Below, piece by piece: positions 1,821-19,999 of a DNA stretch of 64,000 nucleotides; the first letter of the stretch is position 1, and each line of letters opens with the position of its first letter. The notes under the pieces are model-generated. The model searched no databases and was not told the DNA's origin. It saw only the letters and a program-made list of their open reading frames with translations. The translations under genes were made by a program, and so were the position numbers. This DNA comes from Epithemia pelagica (taxonomy: Eukaryota > Protista > Bacillariophyta), in NCBI GenBank assembly GCA_946965045.2, contig OX337231.1, forward strand, positions 3,720,001 to 3,784,000, read 5' to 3'.

Positions 1821-2981
1821 ATGGTAACCCCGTTGGTCGACATTCGTTCCTCCTACCATCAGTCCATAAAGTTGGAGAACAAGTCAACTATGGAATCTCT
1901 GTTTTCTCGCAACACCATAACAAGTCCTGATCATACTCCTTTTGATTCACTCGTTCTAAACCCCGCCGATGTGCTCCTGGGAAGGGGCAAGGGGTTTTAC
2001 AAGTGGGCAGGAAATGTGGTGTACTCCAAAATCATATCGTCCTTTGTTCCAGCCTACGAAGCAGCCACCAAGAACAAGGACAAGATGCGAATCTCTCTTG
2101 AGATTGTTTCCCTGATCAAAGTGAACGGAGGTCGCTTTGTGGGAGTCGACACGACATTTGGACCACACGGCGATTCCCTTGTGGAATTGTACGAAGTGTC
2201 GGATGCGGATGCACGGCAAAAGGTGTCCCAGGTGAGTCTTGCTCATGCGTTCAAGTCCATGCTTCCAACAATGGGTCATTGTGCTGAACTGAATGTCCAC
2301 GAATCGATTCTCACACTTGATACAAAACAGGCTTTACGACACAAGAGAAAGCTGTCCAAGTCTAGAAGGAAACGGAGCAAGTCCACTTCCTCCAGCAAGG
2401 CTCACAGTCGTTGTTTTCCCCAGAAGCCCGACCGCGTCGAGAATCAAGACAGACTCTTGACGAAACCAACACCACGCAAGCAAGTCTCAAGGGTTGGACA
2501 GGAACAAGCTTGTATGATGGATTCCTGCTCCATTACCAGCTTACTCAAGACCAGCCCAACGCCCTTGAAGGCTTGCACTGTTCGCGTTCGTCACCACGAA
2601 GATGCCAATGTCCTACGCGACAGTTGTTCACAAGACCAGGAAGCGACATCAGGACGTCTGGTAGTCATGGATTCATCACCCTCCTCCAATCTGGTGTGTC
2701 CTGCTTCTCCTCCCTCCTGTTCCAGTACGACATGTTCTAGCAGCAGCAGCAGTAGCAGTGCTAGTTTGTGTTCGATTGATTTGTTGGAACTCGAAAGTGA
2801 TCACAACCAAGTGATAGACCGGGACAACAGCTGTGGACTGCAACTTCCCGAGAATATGGAGTACTACCATGTCGTGGACACGGACAATGCATCCGAGTTT
2901 AGTTTGTTGGATATCGAGGATCAGTCGTGTCTCTTTCCGGAGAGTACGTATGCGTGGCGTTCCCACAATGCTTGTGAATAA
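1821..2981 (+). CDS. DUF6824-domain protein (paralog A), 2 exons; intron 2232-2330
   Basis: Motif DVLLGRGKG..GN..Y...Y....K..I...IV..GGRF...YEVSD.DARQKVSQ|ALRHKRK. GTGAGT donor at 2232 and CAG acceptor at 2330 restore KVSQALR. Start codon could instead be 1890. Confidence 0.85.
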   Translation: MVTPLVDIRSSYHQSIKLENKSTMESLFSRNTITSPDHTPFDSLVLNPADVLLGRGKGFYKWAGNVVYSKIISSFVPAYEAATKNKDKMRISLEIVSLIKVNGGRFVGVDTTFGPHGDSLVELYEVSDADARQKVSQVSLAHAFKSMLPTMGHCAELNVHESILTLDTKQALRHKRKLSKSRRKRSKSTSSSKAHSRCFPQKPDRVENQDRLLTKPTPRKQVSRVGQEQACMMDSCSITSLLKTSPTPLKACTVRVRHHEDANVLRDSCSQDQEATSGRLVVMDSSPSSNLVCPASPPSCSSTTCSSSSSSSSASLCSIDLLELESDHNQVIDRDNSCGLQLPENMEYYHVVDTDNASEFSLLDIEDQSCLFPESTYAWRSHNACE

Positions 2982-4008
2982 AGGACACAGACCACATCTT
3001 GTTTTTTGTAGATACTCGCGCATTCTTCATGTTGGGGGTTAACATCATATACATATATATTGTATAGTCAAAAAGTGATTTTCAGAGCACCTTGCCCATT
3101 GTCCAACATGTTTTTCATCGTGGATCAGAAAAAGGATCGAACATTCTGACTTCCCAGTGGAGGCTCTTGAGTGAGCAAACTCGTAGTTCTTGACGACTTC
3201 AAAAGACAATGGCTACCATGGTCCTCGTTCCAACGGCCTCTTGGCCAATCGCCACGAGAGCACCTGCGACTTCCTGTACTTGTGGGATGTGGAGGAGGAG
3301 GATTCATTGGTTCCACTGTGCTACAGCGGTTTGTGGTGGGTCAAGGTTACACGAGAAGTAATCCCATTATTCGTTTCAGCAAAGTTGCGAGTCTGTTTTT
3401 GGATGGGTGAGGAACGACCGCTCCCCAAACAAGTGCAAAACCTGCAGTATTGTGATTGAGTGGAAAGAGCTACAGGCAGTCGTCCAAAGGATCACTGGAA
3501 ACGCATCAACCATCAACGTGTCGCTCAAAGTCCATTCGCCACATCTCTAGAAGAGGACTTGGTTCTTGGTTCGGCAGGAGAAGGGCGATCCCAAAATTAT
3601 TTGTGGAGACTTTTCGATTCCAGACTGCCGACGGACGCTTTCCGCGCCCATTCGTCCGAGCGTGCCTATCTCTATGGGGTTTGATCGTGGTCACGGTTTG
3701 GACCGGCTCGCAATCAATCCATCAGTGTCACGATGACCCCATCGCATCGAACGGCCCTCTCGTTCGAACCTCTTGGCCGATGGCCAAAGCGTGTTCGGTC
3801 CAATTCCATCTTTTATTACCTAGGATAAGTTCCTGTCAGGAGGAATGATGTTTCCGGACGATGGGAACCGATGGAAGTTCCTCGAACGGAGAGTCACAGG
3901 ATGTGCCTTTGTTTCAGGAAAATCTGAACTGCGGCCGCCCGAAATTTTGGGGCTCCTCCTCCACAACGCGCAAGTATCCCAGCAGAGCAACGATTCTTCT
4001 CGTAGAAC

Positions 4009-13697: not shown

Positions 13698-14518
13698 TTA
13701 ATCCAAATAGGCTCGAATCATGATTCCAAACTCCACTTGGGAATACTGTTTCTTCTTTTCCATTCTGAGAAAGGTGGCATCAAAGGCTTCCACCTCTTCG
13801 AGATCCAACTCTTCGAAAATGGGACAGTACTGGAACTGAAACTTGTTCTGGTTCTGTCTAGGTTTCTCGTCGTCTTTTTCCGTTTCCTGTTGTTCTCGTC
13901 GTCGTTGAAATGGATGATTCTTGTCGGGCGGATTCAAAATTTTGATGAGTTGTCCATAGGGATATCGACCAGTCTTGTCCGTAATGTTGTAATCTCGACA
14001 ATTCTCAAAGCCATATCCACAGTAGTTGTGGGGAGATCCCAAAATAATCACCGCCTTATAGTTCAAAGTATCCGAAGCAATGACCAAACTATGATCCACC
14101 AATCGACGTCCAATGCCCAAGCGTTGATAGTCGGGATGGACCCACAGAGGACCAAAGGTGACAGTGGGAATCTTCTCTTGCTCTTGTGGTTGGTCCTTCT
14201 CCTCCTCCATATTGTCGCTTCGAATCACATGCGACTGACTGTACATGATGCATCCCACAATCTCCTTGGTCGTTTCCAGTTCTGCCACAAAGCTCAGTTC
14301 CGGCACGTAATCGGCATGGTGGCGCAATCGATCCGTCAAGTAGTGCTCATCGCAGCCCGGACCGTAGAGATTCCAAAAGGCTCGACGGCACAACTCCTCG
14401 ACGGTCCGATAATCGGCGGGGGTTTCGTGACGAAGGATCACATTATGGTGGTGGACTGATGGTTCTTTGCTGTTGTTGTTGTTGTTGTTGTTGTTGTTGC
14501 TGTTGTTGTTGTTGTTGC

Positions 14519-14552
<34 letters not shown>

Positions 14553-14564
14553 CATGGTCGTCAT
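13698..14564 (-). CDS. GNAT family N-acetyltransferase, bacterial (YhbS-like) type, with N-terminal poly-Asn
   Basis: ILRHETPADYRTVEELCRRAFWNLYGPGCDEHYL..RLRHHADYVPELSFVAE; acetyl-CoA motif A FGPLWVHPDYQRLGIGRRL; AVIILGSP..Y..YGF; C-terminal VEAFDATF..EKK..SQ.EF. No intron. Confidence 0.92.
14468..14552. repeat. (GTT/GCT)n microsatellite encoding Asn/Ser tract of the GNAT
   Basis: Seen directly in sequence. Confidence 0.95.
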
Positions 14565-14894
14565 GGTCGGTGTTCTTTTTTTTTTTTGTCTTCGTTTGTT
14601 GTTATTTTATAATTCTATGGTGCGTGTGGTGTGTGACTAAGCGGCCGGACCGCTAAGTAGGTGGGGCTGTGTGGGGAAGAATTGTGAAAGAGTGTAGGGT
14701 GTGTAAAGTGGAACCTGTGGTTTTTGTAGAGAAAATGAGAACGTCTGGTTTTGTTCCTCGGTGTTCTCGAAAGTGGAGTGACGGACAGACCCATATATCG
14801 GTTCCGTGCGTGTGGGTAGACTATAGTTGCTTAGGAGTAGGTGGTTTGATGAGTTCGTTGTCCTGTTCTGCATAGAGACGAGTAATAGGCACGA

Positions 14895-15272
14895 TCCGCT
14901 AAGCCTCAAGTCCAACAAAGATCTACCGAATCAGTCAATCGAGAAACAAATACATGATATGCTATTCTTAATCTCTTTTTCCGGTATGCTGCCTGTCGAC
15001 TTTCGGGACGACAAACGTTCCCCCTCATACTCCTACTGCTTGATGTTTCGTTTTCTTGACCAGTTCGGCCTCCTACTGCTCGGTTTTCTGGAAGTAGGAA
15101 GTAAAGGAAGAAGCCCAATACAATGAGCAAGGGGACTCCAAGACCGACCGTGAGTCCAATGGCCAGTGCCTTGTTGGTACTTGGGTTCGTCGTCGTCGTC
15201 GTCGTCACTCGTACTGCTTTTTTGGTATGCTGCTCCTCGCTGTCACAGGTCACAGCTCAACAAGAGAGGCCA
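14895..15272 (-). pseudogene. Inverted, degenerate copy of the NikA-like gene 3' end (TM anchor + 3' UTR, 17645-17980)
   Basis: Reverse complement reads NKALAIGLTVGLGVPLLIVLGFF and continues into matching 3' UTR; contains indels and frameshifts. Confidence 0.88.
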
Positions 15273-15772
15273 ATCTAGAATCTAGGCCAATGCGGCATGC
15301 GGCTAGACTACTGCTACTTTCGCTGTCACAGGTCACAGCTCAACAAGAGAGGCCAATGCGGCTACATTACTGCTACTACTTTCGGAGCCAAGATCTTTGG
15401 CTTTGGCCTGTTCAATGTGCGACCATGCTCGGTAGGTAAGATCCGTAAGAGTATTGCATGTACTTTACACTGGACATCAACGTCAACGAGGGTGTATATC
15501 TACGAGTATAGAATAGAAGGCAGGAGTCGCCAACATCTACTCCTTTTAAGTCGTCATTATTTGGCCGATTGAGGCCGATTGTGCACGTCCATGTCCAAAG
15601 AACAGACAGTGCAAATAGGCCTAGAGATTAGGCCTTAAATGAAGTGTCTCATGTCTCGAAAGATCTTTGGGGTCGGCACACCCAAGATTTGATATGACAA
15701 AACCAATGATATTGGAACGAAGCATCTAGGTAGATCGCTCTATCGCATCGAGAAACCAAGAAGAACGACACC

Positions 15773-17856
15773 ATGATGATGATGATGATGATGATGATGA
15801 GGATGCTCGTTGGATGGGCCGTTCTTGGTTGGACAACGCCCAGTGCCGTGGCCATGACGACGACGCTGGACCTGGCACATCTCCGCCGCGCCTTGACCGA
15901 GTGAGTTTGTTCGTTGTGTGTGTTGTGGTGTTTTAGTGGAGGACGCGATCGTTGAAAAGATTTGTCCGTGGCGTGGCCGGGATACAGTTGTGTGTTGTTT
16001 GTTGTGTTGGGACCGTATCGTCGAACATGTGTGTGTCTCACAGTACCCATTGTGGTTGACACAGCACGGATGCCGCCAAGCAGTGCAACGGTCAGTTTCC
16101 CGCCCTGGATTTTTTGACGATTGAAACCGAAGTGTCGCATCAGGCGGCGGAAGCTGATGTCCGTGCCGACTTGGAGGCGGTGGGGTTCACCGTCAACAAT
16201 CGTCCCCTGAAAAAGGACGAGTACAATGCCGAATTGGTGGCGGGCAACTTTCATTTGGCCTTTTCCGAAACCTATGGGGAACCCTACGATCCTCACGCCT
16301 TTGCGGGGGGATGGCGACAAGGCGATGGCGAAGGTCTCAATCATCCCTTTGCCAACTTGACGGGTGGCGATTCCGGCGAAGAGCTCTTTCAAATGATTGA
16401 TGACGTCTTGCTGACGACGTCCGTCACGGAACGCGAGCGACAATGGCGGGCGATTCACCAGTACTATCACCGCAATGCCGTCATGTTGCCCATGTGGGGC
16501 AAGCGCGTACCGACCGTCTTGAATCGACGACTCACCAACTACGAGCCGGGACATCAACAATTCGACTATCCGGTGCATCGGCTCATTGTCAGTCCGGGAA
16601 CCTCCCGCGACTTGACCATTGCCCCTGGAGGACAAACGGGCCTCTTCCAGACTGTGGGTCGGTTGGATCCCCACACGTATCGCCCCAATGAATTTTTTGC
16701 CAACAATTGGGTCTACGAAGGCTTGGTCACGTATGGTGCAGGATCGCAAATCTTGCCTTCGTTGGCCGAAAGCTTTGACACGGAGGACAACCCCGACACG
16801 GGGGGCTACAAGTACATCTTTCAGCTTCGACAAAACGTGACCTTTCATGACGGTGCCGCCTGGAATTGTGCGGCGGCCCGACTGAACTTTGACCATTTCA
16901 CCCAAGGAGTGGGAGGAATGAGCGCCTTGCAAGACTACACCTGCGAGAGCGAATTTGTCTTTGTTGTCACGACCAACAACAAGGCCTACACCTTTCTCTA
17001 CGATCTGGCCTACATTCGGCCCCGCCGCATGCTCTCCCCCCAAGCCTTTTTGAATGGACCCACCACAGATCCCATTACCGCAAATTCCTGCGAGCCATCG
17101 CGGACGACCATTGAAGGTATTACCTGTGTGGGCATTGCCAATGTGGCCGGGACCGGGCCGTTCGTGTTGGCCTCGGACTTGCCGGACCGCAATAATCGAG
17201 ACCCCAGTTCGAACCATATCGATGACGAGGTCCTCTTTACCGTCAATCAAGACTACTGGGATGGTCCAGCGCAGTTTGATTCCCTCAAGGTGGTTCGGTA
17301 TGAGACGACGCAAGCCGTCAAGGCGGCCCTCTTGAACAATGAGCTCGACATTGTCTGGGGCTCGGGCGTCTTGACCAACACGGACATTTTGGAACTGCGG
17401 GACCAGGACGACAGCAATGTCAATGTCTTTTTCTCGTCCGATATTCAAAATGGCATGATCATTTTCAACACGGGCAAGGCGCCTCTGAATGACTTTAATG
17501 TCCGCAAGATTATTATGCACTCGATCCACAAGAGCGAAATTGTTGAAAAGGAACAGTTGGGCCAAGTCGTGGACAATGTCTTTCCCCGTCATATTCGCCA
17601 TTGCGACGTGGACTTGACGCCCCATTGGGATTATGATCCCGAAAAGGCCGTCTTGTTGAGCTGTGAAAGCGAGGAGCAGAAAAACAAAAAAAGCAGTACA
17701 AGTGACGACGACGATAACAAGGCACTGGCCATTGGACTCTCGCTTGGTCTCGGAATCCCCTTGCTCATTGTATTGGGTTTCTTCATTTACTACTTTCAGA
17801 AAACCAAGCAGTACGAGGCCGAACTGGTCAAGAAAACGGAAAACCAAGCCGTATGA
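15773..17856 (+). CDS. nikA: NikA-like family-5 solute-binding protein, circularly permuted, with signal peptide and C-terminal TM anchor; exon1 15773-15900, exon2 16065-17856
   Basis: SETYGEPYDPHAF (E. coli NikA HRTWGAPYDPHAF) comes before LDPHTYRPNEFFANNWVYEGLV (NikA LNPHLYTPNQMFAQSMVYEPLV). Also GTGPF, NQDYWDG, FNTGKAPLND..VRK, WDYDPEKA. GTGAGT..CAG phase-2 intron restores the frame. Confidence 0.88.
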
Positions 17857-19925
17857 GTATGAGGGGGAACGTGTGTCGTCACGAACAGCGAAAACCGATG
17901 AAGAATAGCGTATTAACCTTACCTAGTTGTGTCTCGATTGAATGATTCGGCATCTGTGTTGGACTAGGTGTGGCGGACCTCTCTACTACAGGAAAGCAAT
18001 TGCCAGGAAACTAGAGTCTACCCACACAGATGTAACCGATAGCTGAGTCTGTCCGTCTTTCCATTGCAAGAAAACCAAAGAACAACTCTCTAAGTCTTCC
18101 TACCTAGTCGAGTTTTGGAGTTCGCTTCGCAAGTCGCATCGAAAAGTGGGACTGGGATCTGGGATGCAAGATGCAATTGAGACTTTGGGGTGAAATAATC
18201 TGCTCCACCGTTGTCATTGTCAACCTTCCCTCTCTTTGCAGAATCCAACGTTTTCTTGTTGGAACGTCACAAAACAGTCACTTCCTTGGTGAGGGAGCAG
18301 CAACAACCCAGTCGCTGTTGCTGTATTCGGTGGTGTATCGGATGAGACTGTTGCCGTGGAACCAACGGTATCGATCGGCGGACAGCCACTCTGGTTGGAT
18401 CAACAAAATCGGATAGGAGGTGGATTGTCAAGAACAGCCCGCCACGACGACGACGACAAGACGTGCCAAGGAGAGATCTGAATCCGCCTTGCTTGCTTGC
18501 ATGAGGAGTCAGGCTCGATAACTTATTTTCATCATATACCATATTCACATGCTTGCTACAAGCCAGCGAATAGCCTTCTTCGAGACAATCCAGAGGCCAT
18601 TGTCGGAGAGGTCTTATGCCCAATCATCAGCCACTGTGACTCCACCAACGAAAGCAAGACATATGGTGAACTCGCTATTCGGAGCCTTGTGATCCACTCA
18701 ACTAAGTTGCGGTTCTTTTGTGCGTTTGCGCCTTGGCCTGGCCTTGTTGTAAGAGGTAGTGGCAAAAGTCGAGGAGGCAGTACAACAACACCTGTGGCAA
18801 ATCGTCTGGATCCGCAGTCATTTGAACCTGGCACTTGTACCGCTCCGAGCATGAACCCATGTCCACAACATGCTATTGCAGAAAGCCAGATTCTTCATGA
18901 CTTGTGTGAGCACAGTCCATGAATTCATCACCATCATTGTTGTATTGCCCGAGCCAACAACACATTCCACAGAGCTGCATAGAAGCGTCACTCGAGTGAG
19001 AGACAGACAAGGATACACATGTTGTTATACAGCCGAGATTGATACCTCGGAACGAAGCAGCACCCGTACCATACATCAATTCACGATCACTGGACCAACT
19101 GAGATCATTCGGACATTAGAACTGTGAGAATGAAAAGGCCGCTTGGTCACAAAGTCTCACCAAACCCTCCAACATATGCAAATCGATCGTTGCTACGAGC
19201 AAGCTGCCGCTTCATGTCGTTCGATCTAGTACCAAAAGAGATGGAGGACCATGAGATCTCTCGTGTCATGATGAATAGAAATGTTCGACTTGACGGACCG
19301 AGAAACATGGCAATCGGTGGGATGGACGCATGCGTTTTGCGTTGTGAAGAGCGGAACTTTCGGACTACTAGAGAAAGAGATGGAAGAACTTGTGCCATAA
19401 TGAATCGACATGATGTGTTCAAGAAGTCGACTCTTGACGGATCGAGAATCGAGAATGGTGGATGGACACGATGGACATGCGTTGAAGAGTGACGAGCGGA
19501 CCTCCGTTCAGAACACCACCTGGCGCTATTGCTATGCCCGCATAGACTGCATAGCACCTCGATCAAAGCCCCTCTGGATGGTGGAGCACTGCGGGATTGG
19601 CCGTCCTGTTCTTTGGAAAAAAACAACCAGAATGAATACAAAATACACGATGACGTTGAATATATTGAATGGGCAATCGGCATTCGGCCCAATACAACAC
19701 TGGGCAATCGCCGAGAGGAAACATTACTACTTCTTGTGGGCATGATGCACGGAGTACGACGTGTCCTCTGATTTTCGCTTTTGGCTATGATCATGAACGA
19801 AGAAGCTATTAAAGCTACCCTTCCGAGTATACCCGAACAGGCCAAAGATGTAACGGAGACTAACGTTTGCTGCGAGAAAAATGGCGGGGCTCCTAGAGAT
19901 CCAAAAAAGTTCTTTTTCCAGAAAA

Positions 19926-19999
19926 ATGGTATGCAATCTTTGCGATTGTGCATGTCGAGTTGATGGTATGCAATCTTTGCGATTGTGCATGTCGAGTTG
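19926..19999 (+). repeat. Perfect 37-bp tandem duplication
   Basis: ATGGTATGCAATCTTTGCGATTGTGCATGTCGAGTTG x2, just upstream of the DUF6824 paralog C start. Confidence 0.95.

Follow-up and report, generated by a model that had tools for sequence, protein, structure and literature searches.

A circularly permuted NikA-type ectodomain in a ZCRP-B protein, predicted to be membrane-anchored, of the diatom Epithemia pelagica

Introduction

NikA is the periplasmic Ni-(L-His)2/metallophore-binding protein of the NikABCDE importer, and CntA (Opp1A) of S. aureus is a staphylopine-metal binder whose substrate is an opine chelate of Zn, Co or Ni. In this study, we analyse a gene that codes for a relative of these proteins in the diatom Epithemia pelagica, located on the plus strand at positions 15773-17856 of a 64,000-nucleotide stretch of DNA (hereafter, the window; GenBank assembly GCA_946965045.2, contig OX337231.1, positions 3,720,001 to 3,784,000 of the forward strand), and we show that its NikA-type ectodomain is circularly permuted.

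The eukaryotic family to which this gene belongs has been described in marine diatoms by Kellogg et al. 2022 (Nat Commun 13:1995, PMC9010474), who report the NikA-like protein ZCRP-B (Zn/Co-responsive protein B) to be 30.5% identical to E. coli NikA, with T. pseudonana XP_002297477.1 and P. tricornutum XP_002183815.1 as members. According to the same paper, ZCRP-B is induced by Zn/Co scarcity and found at the cell (plasma) membrane, and the authors propose a tethered high-affinity Zn/Co ligand that either feeds ZIP transporters or is endocytosed, by analogy with ISIP2a. Induction of ZCRP-B by low Zn was reported again in a 2026 preprint.

Circular permutation of the ectodomain

The original prediction held that the protein carries the domains of E. 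coli NikA in rotated order, and sequence comparison bears this out. The best PDB sequence match found by phmmer is NikA (E = 4e-38), which aligns in three stretches in swapped order, namely query residues 6-143 with NikA 341-474, 187-330 with NikA 11-156, and 378-549 with NikA 172-342, query residues being counted from position 16093. BLASTP against E. coli NikA, the reference sequence of which was taken from NC_000913, likewise returns two high-scoring segment pairs (HSPs) in swapped order at 28-29% identity, with no single collinear alignment to NikA. The motifs PYDPH, GRLDPHTY and WDYDPEKA, quoted when the rotation was first proposed, are all found in the protein, and the Pfam family SBP_bac_5 (PF00496), which covers solute-binding proteins (SBPs), scores 110.5 bits against a cut-off of 32.4. 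The locus codes for a circularly permuted NikA-type ectodomain, arranged as follows (ligand-site residues are numbered throughout as in mature NikA, a numbering checked on the sequence):

16066..16590, plus strand: first mature segment, corresponding to the C-terminal third of NikA (about residues 337-502), with PYDPH (NikA Y402), W398Y, and Glu at the His416 position
16573..16632, plus strand: permutation junction, at which a head-to-tail fusion joins the old NikA C-terminus to the old mature N-terminus, with a 4-residue insertion
16591..17661, plus strand: second segment, corresponding to the N-terminal two-thirds of NikA (about residues 1-322), ending WDYDPEKA..LLSC

The junction lies within a single uninterrupted open reading frame (ORF; 16093-17856) that contains no stop or frameshift. 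When the family is aligned to a computationally rotated NikA, the old last residues run into the first mature residues with the four-residue insertion only, and the new chain ends fall in a surface loop of NikA, between residues ~322 and ~337.

Distribution of the permutation and bacterial relatives

Homologues were collected in two word searches of 120 relatives each, one seeded with the window protein and one with a 37%-identical paralogue on contig 18 of the same genome. Swapped order relative to NikA was found in 219 of the 241 algal homologues and collinear order in none, the remaining 22 giving a single HSP and being almost all N-terminally truncated entries. A canonical C-terminal third following the transmembrane (TM) anchor was seen in 0 of the 241. 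The named sources include the diatoms Thalassiosira, Cyclotella, Conticribra, Nitzschia, Seminavis and Coscinodiscus (the last by its MMETSP label), together with the bolidophyte Triparma, Symbiodinium, a Rhodomonas-labelled record and the green alga Pycnococcus. Among the permuted homologues are MMETSP transcripts marked complete, proteins from chromosome-scale diatom assemblies, and the product of the second locus in the same genome. The permutation is a trait of the family and not an artefact.

A profile spanning the junction, run against 185,579 bacterial and archaeal species genomes, matched 61 loci, each of them on one side of the junction only. One bacterial locus considered as junction-spanning (L023) was rejected, as it holds a canonical 521-residue NikA followed by nikB and the tblastn extension proved spurious. 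A collinear single HSP with NikA was obtained for all 48 proteins that could be extracted from the bacterial loci. In a maximum-likelihood (ML) tree, unrooted and with a bacterial sample seeded by two motifs only, one branch with a Shimodaira-Hasegawa-like approximate likelihood ratio test (SH-aLRT) support of 100 divides 55 permuted algal proteins from 49 bacterial ones. The algal side comprises two groups, the window type with support 87 and the contig-18 type with support 91, a topology that fits a single permutation event predating the split into these subfamilies.

The gene in the window is the only window-type gene of the genome. The contig-18 paralogue (G000:C18:2031044-2032660; L002 1330-3153, minus strand) is intact and permuted, codes for 607 residues in one ORF, and starts without a signal peptide, so that an upstream exon is likely there.

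Two further proteins with folds of this kind were encountered. A third SBP_bac_5 match in the genome, unrelated to ZCRP-B, lies on contig 9 (G000:C9:948453-948809; L066 ~2850-3643, plus strand) and is a 253-residue open frame that holds the C-terminal third of a family-5 SBP only, with a hydrophobic tail at its end. A signal-peptide-like stretch and a few residues resembling an SBP N-terminus lie upstream in another frame, and the match may represent either a gene with an internal deletion or a mini-protein. Separately, P0089, a 981-residue protein from a 503-kb ENA contig, has an N-terminal Peripla_BP_2 domain (PF01497), a siderophore/B12-type binding fold, fused ahead of an entire ZCRP-B domain in permuted order. 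No TM segment is obvious in this protein, and its single chain combines two metal-chelate receptor folds.

Predicted structure

An AlphaFold2 model computed from 81 sequences shows one compact fold, with a mean predicted local distance difference test score (pLDDT) of 91.6 and a predicted template modelling score of 0.84. Its top structural matches are NikA (Brucella and E. coli), followed by CntA. The overlay on NikA that had been suggested as a check succeeds for model residues 180-534, which VIA-align places on NikA 1-321 with Z 25 and a root-mean-square deviation (rmsd) of 1.7-2.8 Å. Foldseek and VIA-align depend on sequence order, and therefore only two-thirds of the model are aligned, the first ~178 residues being left out. 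Together with the Pfam score, the two-lobed fold places the protein among the family-5 (cluster C) SBPs, with a segment order unlike that of every solved member listed.

In the full model, the N-terminal segment has pLDDT values of 84-98 per 10-residue block, mostly above 90. When the first 180 residues are folded alone, the values fall to 36-95 per block (mean 72.3) and two strands are lost, which indicates that the segment needs the rest of the chain. The isolated segment matches only C-terminal thirds of family-5 SBPs, such as NikA 312-467 and MppA 361-505 (Z 5-8.7, high rmsd); this isolated model is mediocre and its matches have poor rmsd, so that they lend directional support only. Based on the models, we read the first segment as filling the place of the C-terminal third of NikA and thereby completing the fold.

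Gene structure and read evidence

The gene is best described as two exons:

15773..15900, plus strand: exon 1, which opens with a run of nine ATG codons, continues into a hydrophobic signal peptide and ends in phase 2 before GTGAGT
15901..16064, plus strand: intron of 164 nt (GT...AG), with the donor GTGAGT at 15901 and AG at 16063-16064
16065..17856, plus strand: exon 2, coding for the whole mature protein and including the stop codon (17854-17856)

An uninterrupted plus-strand frame runs from 16060 to the stop at 17854-17856 and begins without a Met or a signal peptide, being closed upstream by a TGA at 16057-16059; an upstream exon is therefore needed. Joining 15900 to 16065 preserves the frame and would yield a protein of 639 residues, the hydrophobic window of exon 1 covering residues 1-19 by hydropathy. 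Full-length homologues mostly have 600-680 residues and begin with a signal peptide of 20-40 residues, after which come a conserved Cys and then the first strand. The putative splice and signal-peptide exon are well motivated by the sequence and by these homologue N-termini. An 'HLRDL' motif of exon 1 was considered as evidence of conservation and dropped, as it is common to one homologue only. The public gene call at the locus (P0001, 574 residues) misses exon 1 and starts at a GTG codon read as Met.

Genomic contigs from two sequencing runs span both the permutation junction and the loop-deletion site described below without indels; the two runs of the organism look genomic because their contigs cover the intron. 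Two marine metatranscriptomes hold pieces of the gene of 203 and 360 nt that are 99-100% identical to it. Spliced contigs across the intron were absent among the genomic-run and metatranscriptome contigs matching the gene.

The nine ATG codons at the gene start form an (ATG)9 microsatellite (15773-15799), with which the predicted protein opens on nine Met residues. Read mapping flags 15758-15812 as a repeat and contigs break there, and the actual start codon, like the length of the repeat, may vary. A 732-residue antisense ORF (15649-17847, minus strand) lies opposite the whole gene and was set aside as a by-product of codon bias, the sense gene having homologues at E = 0.

Membrane anchoring and cysteines

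Downstream of the ectodomain, the protein ends in three short elements:

17662..17721, plus strand: acidic stalk, rich in Ser and Thr, lying between ectodomain and membrane, with a low model pLDDT of 52-73
17722..17796, plus strand: predicted TM helix (residues 596-620 of the spliced protein), with a Kyte-Doolittle maximum of 2.45
17797..17853, plus strand: Lys-rich cytosolic tail of 19 residues, by translation

The model has a helix over the TM segment (model residues 549-593), and hydropathy and model together predict a signal peptide and one C-terminal TM helix. This architecture agrees with the earlier proposal of a signal peptide on a spliced exon combined with a C-terminal TM helix and short tail, the exon being assigned from the putative splice and the helix from prediction. 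A weak Pfam match to Mid2 and one to Psg1 cover the stalk and TM helix only and were discarded.

Six conserved Cys residues lie in the body of the family's ectodomain and one more just before the first strand, compared with zero in mature NikA; the window protein retains all six. The Cys of the LLxC motif is 98% conserved, and together with the N-terminal Cys it flanks the cut loop. The contig-18 type has no extra Cys at the YCDVD position and therefore has an even number of Cys. Given this even number and the position of the two residues on either side of the cut, a disulfide stapling the new termini together is plausible.

The ligand site and a lost loop

Among 81 aligned family members, Y22, R137 and Y402 are invariant (81/81), and H98 and W100 are kept in 80, the window protein being the sole exception. 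W398 is kept in 77 members and replaced by Tyr in the window protein, and the His416 position is Glu in 75 of the 81, including the window protein, the window-type consensus reading D-E-G-H. The contig-18 paralogue retains R97, H98, W100, W398 and His416. The exception at H98 and W100 is explained by a deletion:

16894..16920, plus strand: deletion of 10 residues that removes the H-x-W loop (NikA R97-H98-A99-W100), a gap relative to every homologue

The absence of the RHAW ligand-contact segment had been noted in the original prediction and taken as a sign of altered specificity. The gap is confined to this protein among ~240 homologues, and its sister P0005 has the motif. The model crosses the deletion site with pLDDT 82-94, and in the ML tree the terminal branch of the window protein measures 0.66, that of the sister being 0.32 and the median 0.21. 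The deletion may have altered the specificity of this copy or may mark early decay.

In NikA, Y22, R137 and Y402 touch the carboxylates of the chelator and not the metal, in keeping with the titles of PDB entries. From the titles of PDB 3QIM and 3DP8, we also take His416 to be the single protein ligand to Ni, and the R97/W100 loop to contact the chelator. The residues conserved in the family are thus the chelator-carboxylate contacts of NikA, and a metal chelate would therefore be the favoured ligand.

Identity with ZCRP-B

Over 99% of its length, the window protein shares 48% of its residues with the T. profunda protein P0033. In Supplementary Fig. 6 of PMC9010474, strings from P0033 are recognisable in the rows for T. 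pseudonana ZCRP-B, which likewise have the N-terminal extension and a hydrophobic C-terminus, and the VPSH motif typical of the contig-18 type occurs in the row for P. tricornutum. With the T. pseudonana row resembling P0033 and the P. tricornutum row resembling the contig-18 type, both subfamilies have a published Zn/Co-responsive member, and the published proteomics tie both to Zn/Co scarcity (PMC9010474). No accession linking any match to XP_002297477.1 or XP_002183815.1 was found in the cluster listings. Judged by its sequence, the window gene is an unusually divergent, T. pseudonana-type member of ZCRP-B.

Supplementary Fig. 6 of PMC9010474 aligns ZCRP-B collinearly with NikA and CntA, and its gaps face ~170 N-terminal residues of ZCRP-B and the last ~150 residues of NikA. 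The words permutation, rearrangement, extension and truncation are absent from the main text of that paper, and nothing relevant on circular permutation of SBPs or of NikA emerged from the literature searched. We therefore treat the family as known and published, and its circular permutation as unreported within that literature.

Genome context

The earlier observation that the window holds no ABC (ATP-binding cassette) permease extends to the whole genome: the permease domain BPD_transp_1 (PF00528) has 0 matches in the 60.5-Mb, 23-contig assembly and was detected in all 14 control genomes. No transporter was found among ten neighbouring ORFs scanned against Pfam, in which the matches are to a GNAT acetyltransferase, two DUF6824 proteins and a helicase-associated (HA) domain protein. 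ZIP has 11 matches in the genome, none of them near either paralogue, and physical linkage to ZIP genes was accordingly rejected.

One feature of the upstream flank relates to the gene itself:

14774..15252, minus strand: inverted partial duplicate of the 3' end of the gene, 82-91% identical to 17657-18063

This copy lies ~520 bp upstream of the start codon and spans the stalk, the TM helix, the tail and ~200 nt of 3' flank, with a frameshift in the tail and stops; lying outside the gene proper, it has the look of a remnant left by a local inverted duplication. At its inner end, the copy has an exact direct repeat of 38 nt (15237-15274 and 15320-15357), within which the LLSC codons lie. Two other repeats were observed in the neighbourhood, namely a long (TTG)n run with occasional CTG at 14449-14574, in the 5' part of the GNAT acetyltransferase ORF (13698-14564, minus strand), which read on the minus strand is a CAA/CAG tract that would code for poly-Gln, and an exact 37-nt tandem duplication at 19926-19999 in a 268-residue ORF (19147-19953, minus strand) that has no Pfam match.

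Proposed function and alternative explanations

Taken as a whole, the locus is probably a two-exon diatom nuclear gene for a type I membrane ZCRP-B protein whose permuted NikA ectodomain serves as a surface Zn2+/Co2+ receptor. The ectodomain has the whole family-5 (cluster C) fold of the bacterial NikA from which it derives, with the chain starting in lobe II at NikA ~337, running to the old C-terminus, continuing through the fused old N-terminus and ending at ~322. The simplest route to this order would be that the coding sequence was duplicated in tandem and in frame and then lost its two outer ends, once and before the split into two subfamilies, both of which are found in this genome. The stalk and single TM helix would tether the ectodomain to the plasma membrane, where, in a genome lacking the ABC permease, the receptor most likely captures scarce Zn2+ or Co2+, probably as a carboxylate-bearing chelate, and the metal would then be handed to ZIP-type transporters or the receptor endocytosed. 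Within this scheme, the analysis shows the permutation and its conservation across the family, the fold, the lack of a permease and the loop deletion, published work supplies the Zn/Co induction and the plasma-membrane location of family members, and we infer what the ligand is, how the metal is handed on, a disulfide joining the new termini and what the loss of the loop does in this copy. The idea of a phytotransferrin-like surface metal receptor, raised from the sequence in the original prediction, is supported as a hypothesis but is not new, having already been published for ZCRP-B.

Several points weigh against this account. Overexpression of ZCRP-B in P. tricornutum gave no rise in Co uptake, according to PMC9010474, and metal binding is putative for every ZCRP-B. 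The three-dimensional placement of the permuted segment leans on model confidence and not on an order-independent superposition. Support for expression consists of the two short, near-identical marine metatranscriptome contigs, and the splice is a predicted one. The bacterial scan was seeded with two motifs, and rare permuted bacterial forms may exist. The loss of the loop, the W398Y exchange and the long branch may, moreover, signify another ligand or a loss of function in this copy.

The likeliest alternative is that the window copy is a decaying or neofunctionalised paralogue that no longer binds the family ligand and either has a new one or is turning into a pseudogene. The protein is the sole member without H-x-W among ~240, it carries W398Y on a terminal branch twice as long as that of its sister, and the relic of the inverted 3'-end duplicate 520 bp upstream testifies to local rearrangement. 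Nevertheless, the frame of 639 codons is intact, the protein keeps Y22, R137 and Y402 as well as the six Cys of the family, the model is confident over the deletion site (pLDDT 82-94), the fragments in two metatranscriptomes are 99-100% identical, and no other window-type gene exists in the genome; we regard such a fate as conceivable and hold it with little confidence.

An extended reading, which we consider rather unlikely, is that the permutation was no neutral accident and reflects a eukaryote-specific rebuilding of an ABC-importer receptor. The cut in the surface loop of lobe II would put both chain ends by the membrane, the new Cys pair (one before the first strand and one in LLxC before the stalk) would staple the cut, and the freed docking face could serve a non-ABC partner, either a ZIP transporter or the endocytic machinery. 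In the window copy, loss of H-x-W would have switched the ligand, giving the diatom two surface receptors of differing metal or chelate specificity.

A receptor for nickel or a Ni-chelate, supplying urease or Ni-SOD and retaining NikA specificity in a form re-anchored for a eukaryotic cell, is improbable. NikA is indeed the best-scoring bacterial family (TIGR02294 at 208 bits, and the top PDB matches), Y22, R137 and Y402 are conserved, and the contig-18 paralogue retains R97, H98, W100, W398 and His416. However, the TIGR02294 score is well under the cut-off of 393, and the window protein has Glu for His416, Tyr for W398 and no R97-W100 loop. Zn/Co scarcity was found to induce both subfamilies (PMC9010474), no nickel response of ZCRP-B appears in the literature consulted, where Ni limitation is not among the treatments quoted, and the published induction and membrane location make Zn/Co capture likelier than Ni uptake. 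The nickel and urease role put forward in the original prediction is therefore not favoured.

Finally, that the swapped order is an artefact of assembly or annotation, such as the tail of one SBP gene joined to the head of a tandem neighbour, is next to impossible: circular permutations are thought to arise through such tandem intermediates, and the public gene call P0001 (574 residues, GTG start as Met) is plainly imperfect, but the junction has no stop or frameshift, contigs from independent runs agree, the same order recurs in more than 200 homologues, including complete MMETSP transcripts, chromosome-scale assemblies and the second locus here, and no homologue has a canonical C-terminal third after the TM helix.

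Implications

Field studies use ZCRP-B as a marker for zinc stress, and it is the foremost candidate for the ligand with which marine phytoplankton take up Zn at high affinity. The permutation accounts for the 'N-terminal extension' and the 'missing C-terminus' of the published alignment, and it corrects the mapping of residues by placing the PYDPH/His416 region near the N-terminus of the protein. The junction also constitutes a sequence signature that tells algal ZCRP-B from bacterial NikA, which is practically useful because every 'ZCRP-B' field match proved bacterial in a 2025 preprint. More generally, the family offers a clean natural case of a large binding protein with two lobes that became circularly permuted after its transfer to eukaryotes, and the loop deletion makes the window copy a naturally occurring mutant in which the contribution of the loop can be probed. 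The published naming and partial characterisation of the family lower the novelty of the gene, the new element being the family-wide permutation.

Comparison with known systems

The likeness to NikA (E. coli; PDB 1UIV, 3DP8, 4OER) consists of the fold, with Z 25 over ~310 residues, and of Y22, R137 and Y402. The window protein differs from NikA in the permutation, in Glu for His416, in the deleted R97-W100 loop, in six added Cys, and in having a predicted signal peptide and TM anchor with no NikBCDE partner. The NikA equivalog model TIGR02294 aligns to it in two stretches, compared with 840 bits in one stretch for E. coli NikA as a control, and the residues by which a NikA equivalog would be recognised (His416 and the R97/W100 loop) are absent. 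The window protein is NikA-derived and is not a NikA.

CntA (PDB 5YH5, 5YH8, 5YHE) is the second-best family and structural match, with Z 24.4-24.8; the CntA model NF047575 reaches 124 bits, far from its cut-off of 800. Unlike the window protein, CntA has collinear order, an N-terminal lipoprotein anchor and an ABC permease partner. By analogy, its binding of opine chelates is a plausible model for chelate capture.

With ZCRP-B, the window protein shares the NikA-derived SBP_bac_5 ectodomain, the swapped segment order, the single-pass anchoring (in the window protein a predicted one) and the algal distribution. All other members have the H-x-W loop, whereas the window protein lacks it and additionally carries W398Y. 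With its VPSH and RHxW motifs, the contig-18 paralogue is a P. tricornutum-type ZCRP-B. The published description puts the TM helix of the P. tricornutum protein 'near the N-terminus' (PMC9010474), whereas here the N-terminal stretch is taken as a signal peptide and the predicted anchor is C-terminal.

ISIP2a/phytotransferrin provides a functional analogy only. As presented in PMC9010474, it is likewise a single-pass surface protein that captures metal, is induced by scarcity and is endocytosed, but it is unrelated in fold and sequence and binds Fe3+ with carbonate.

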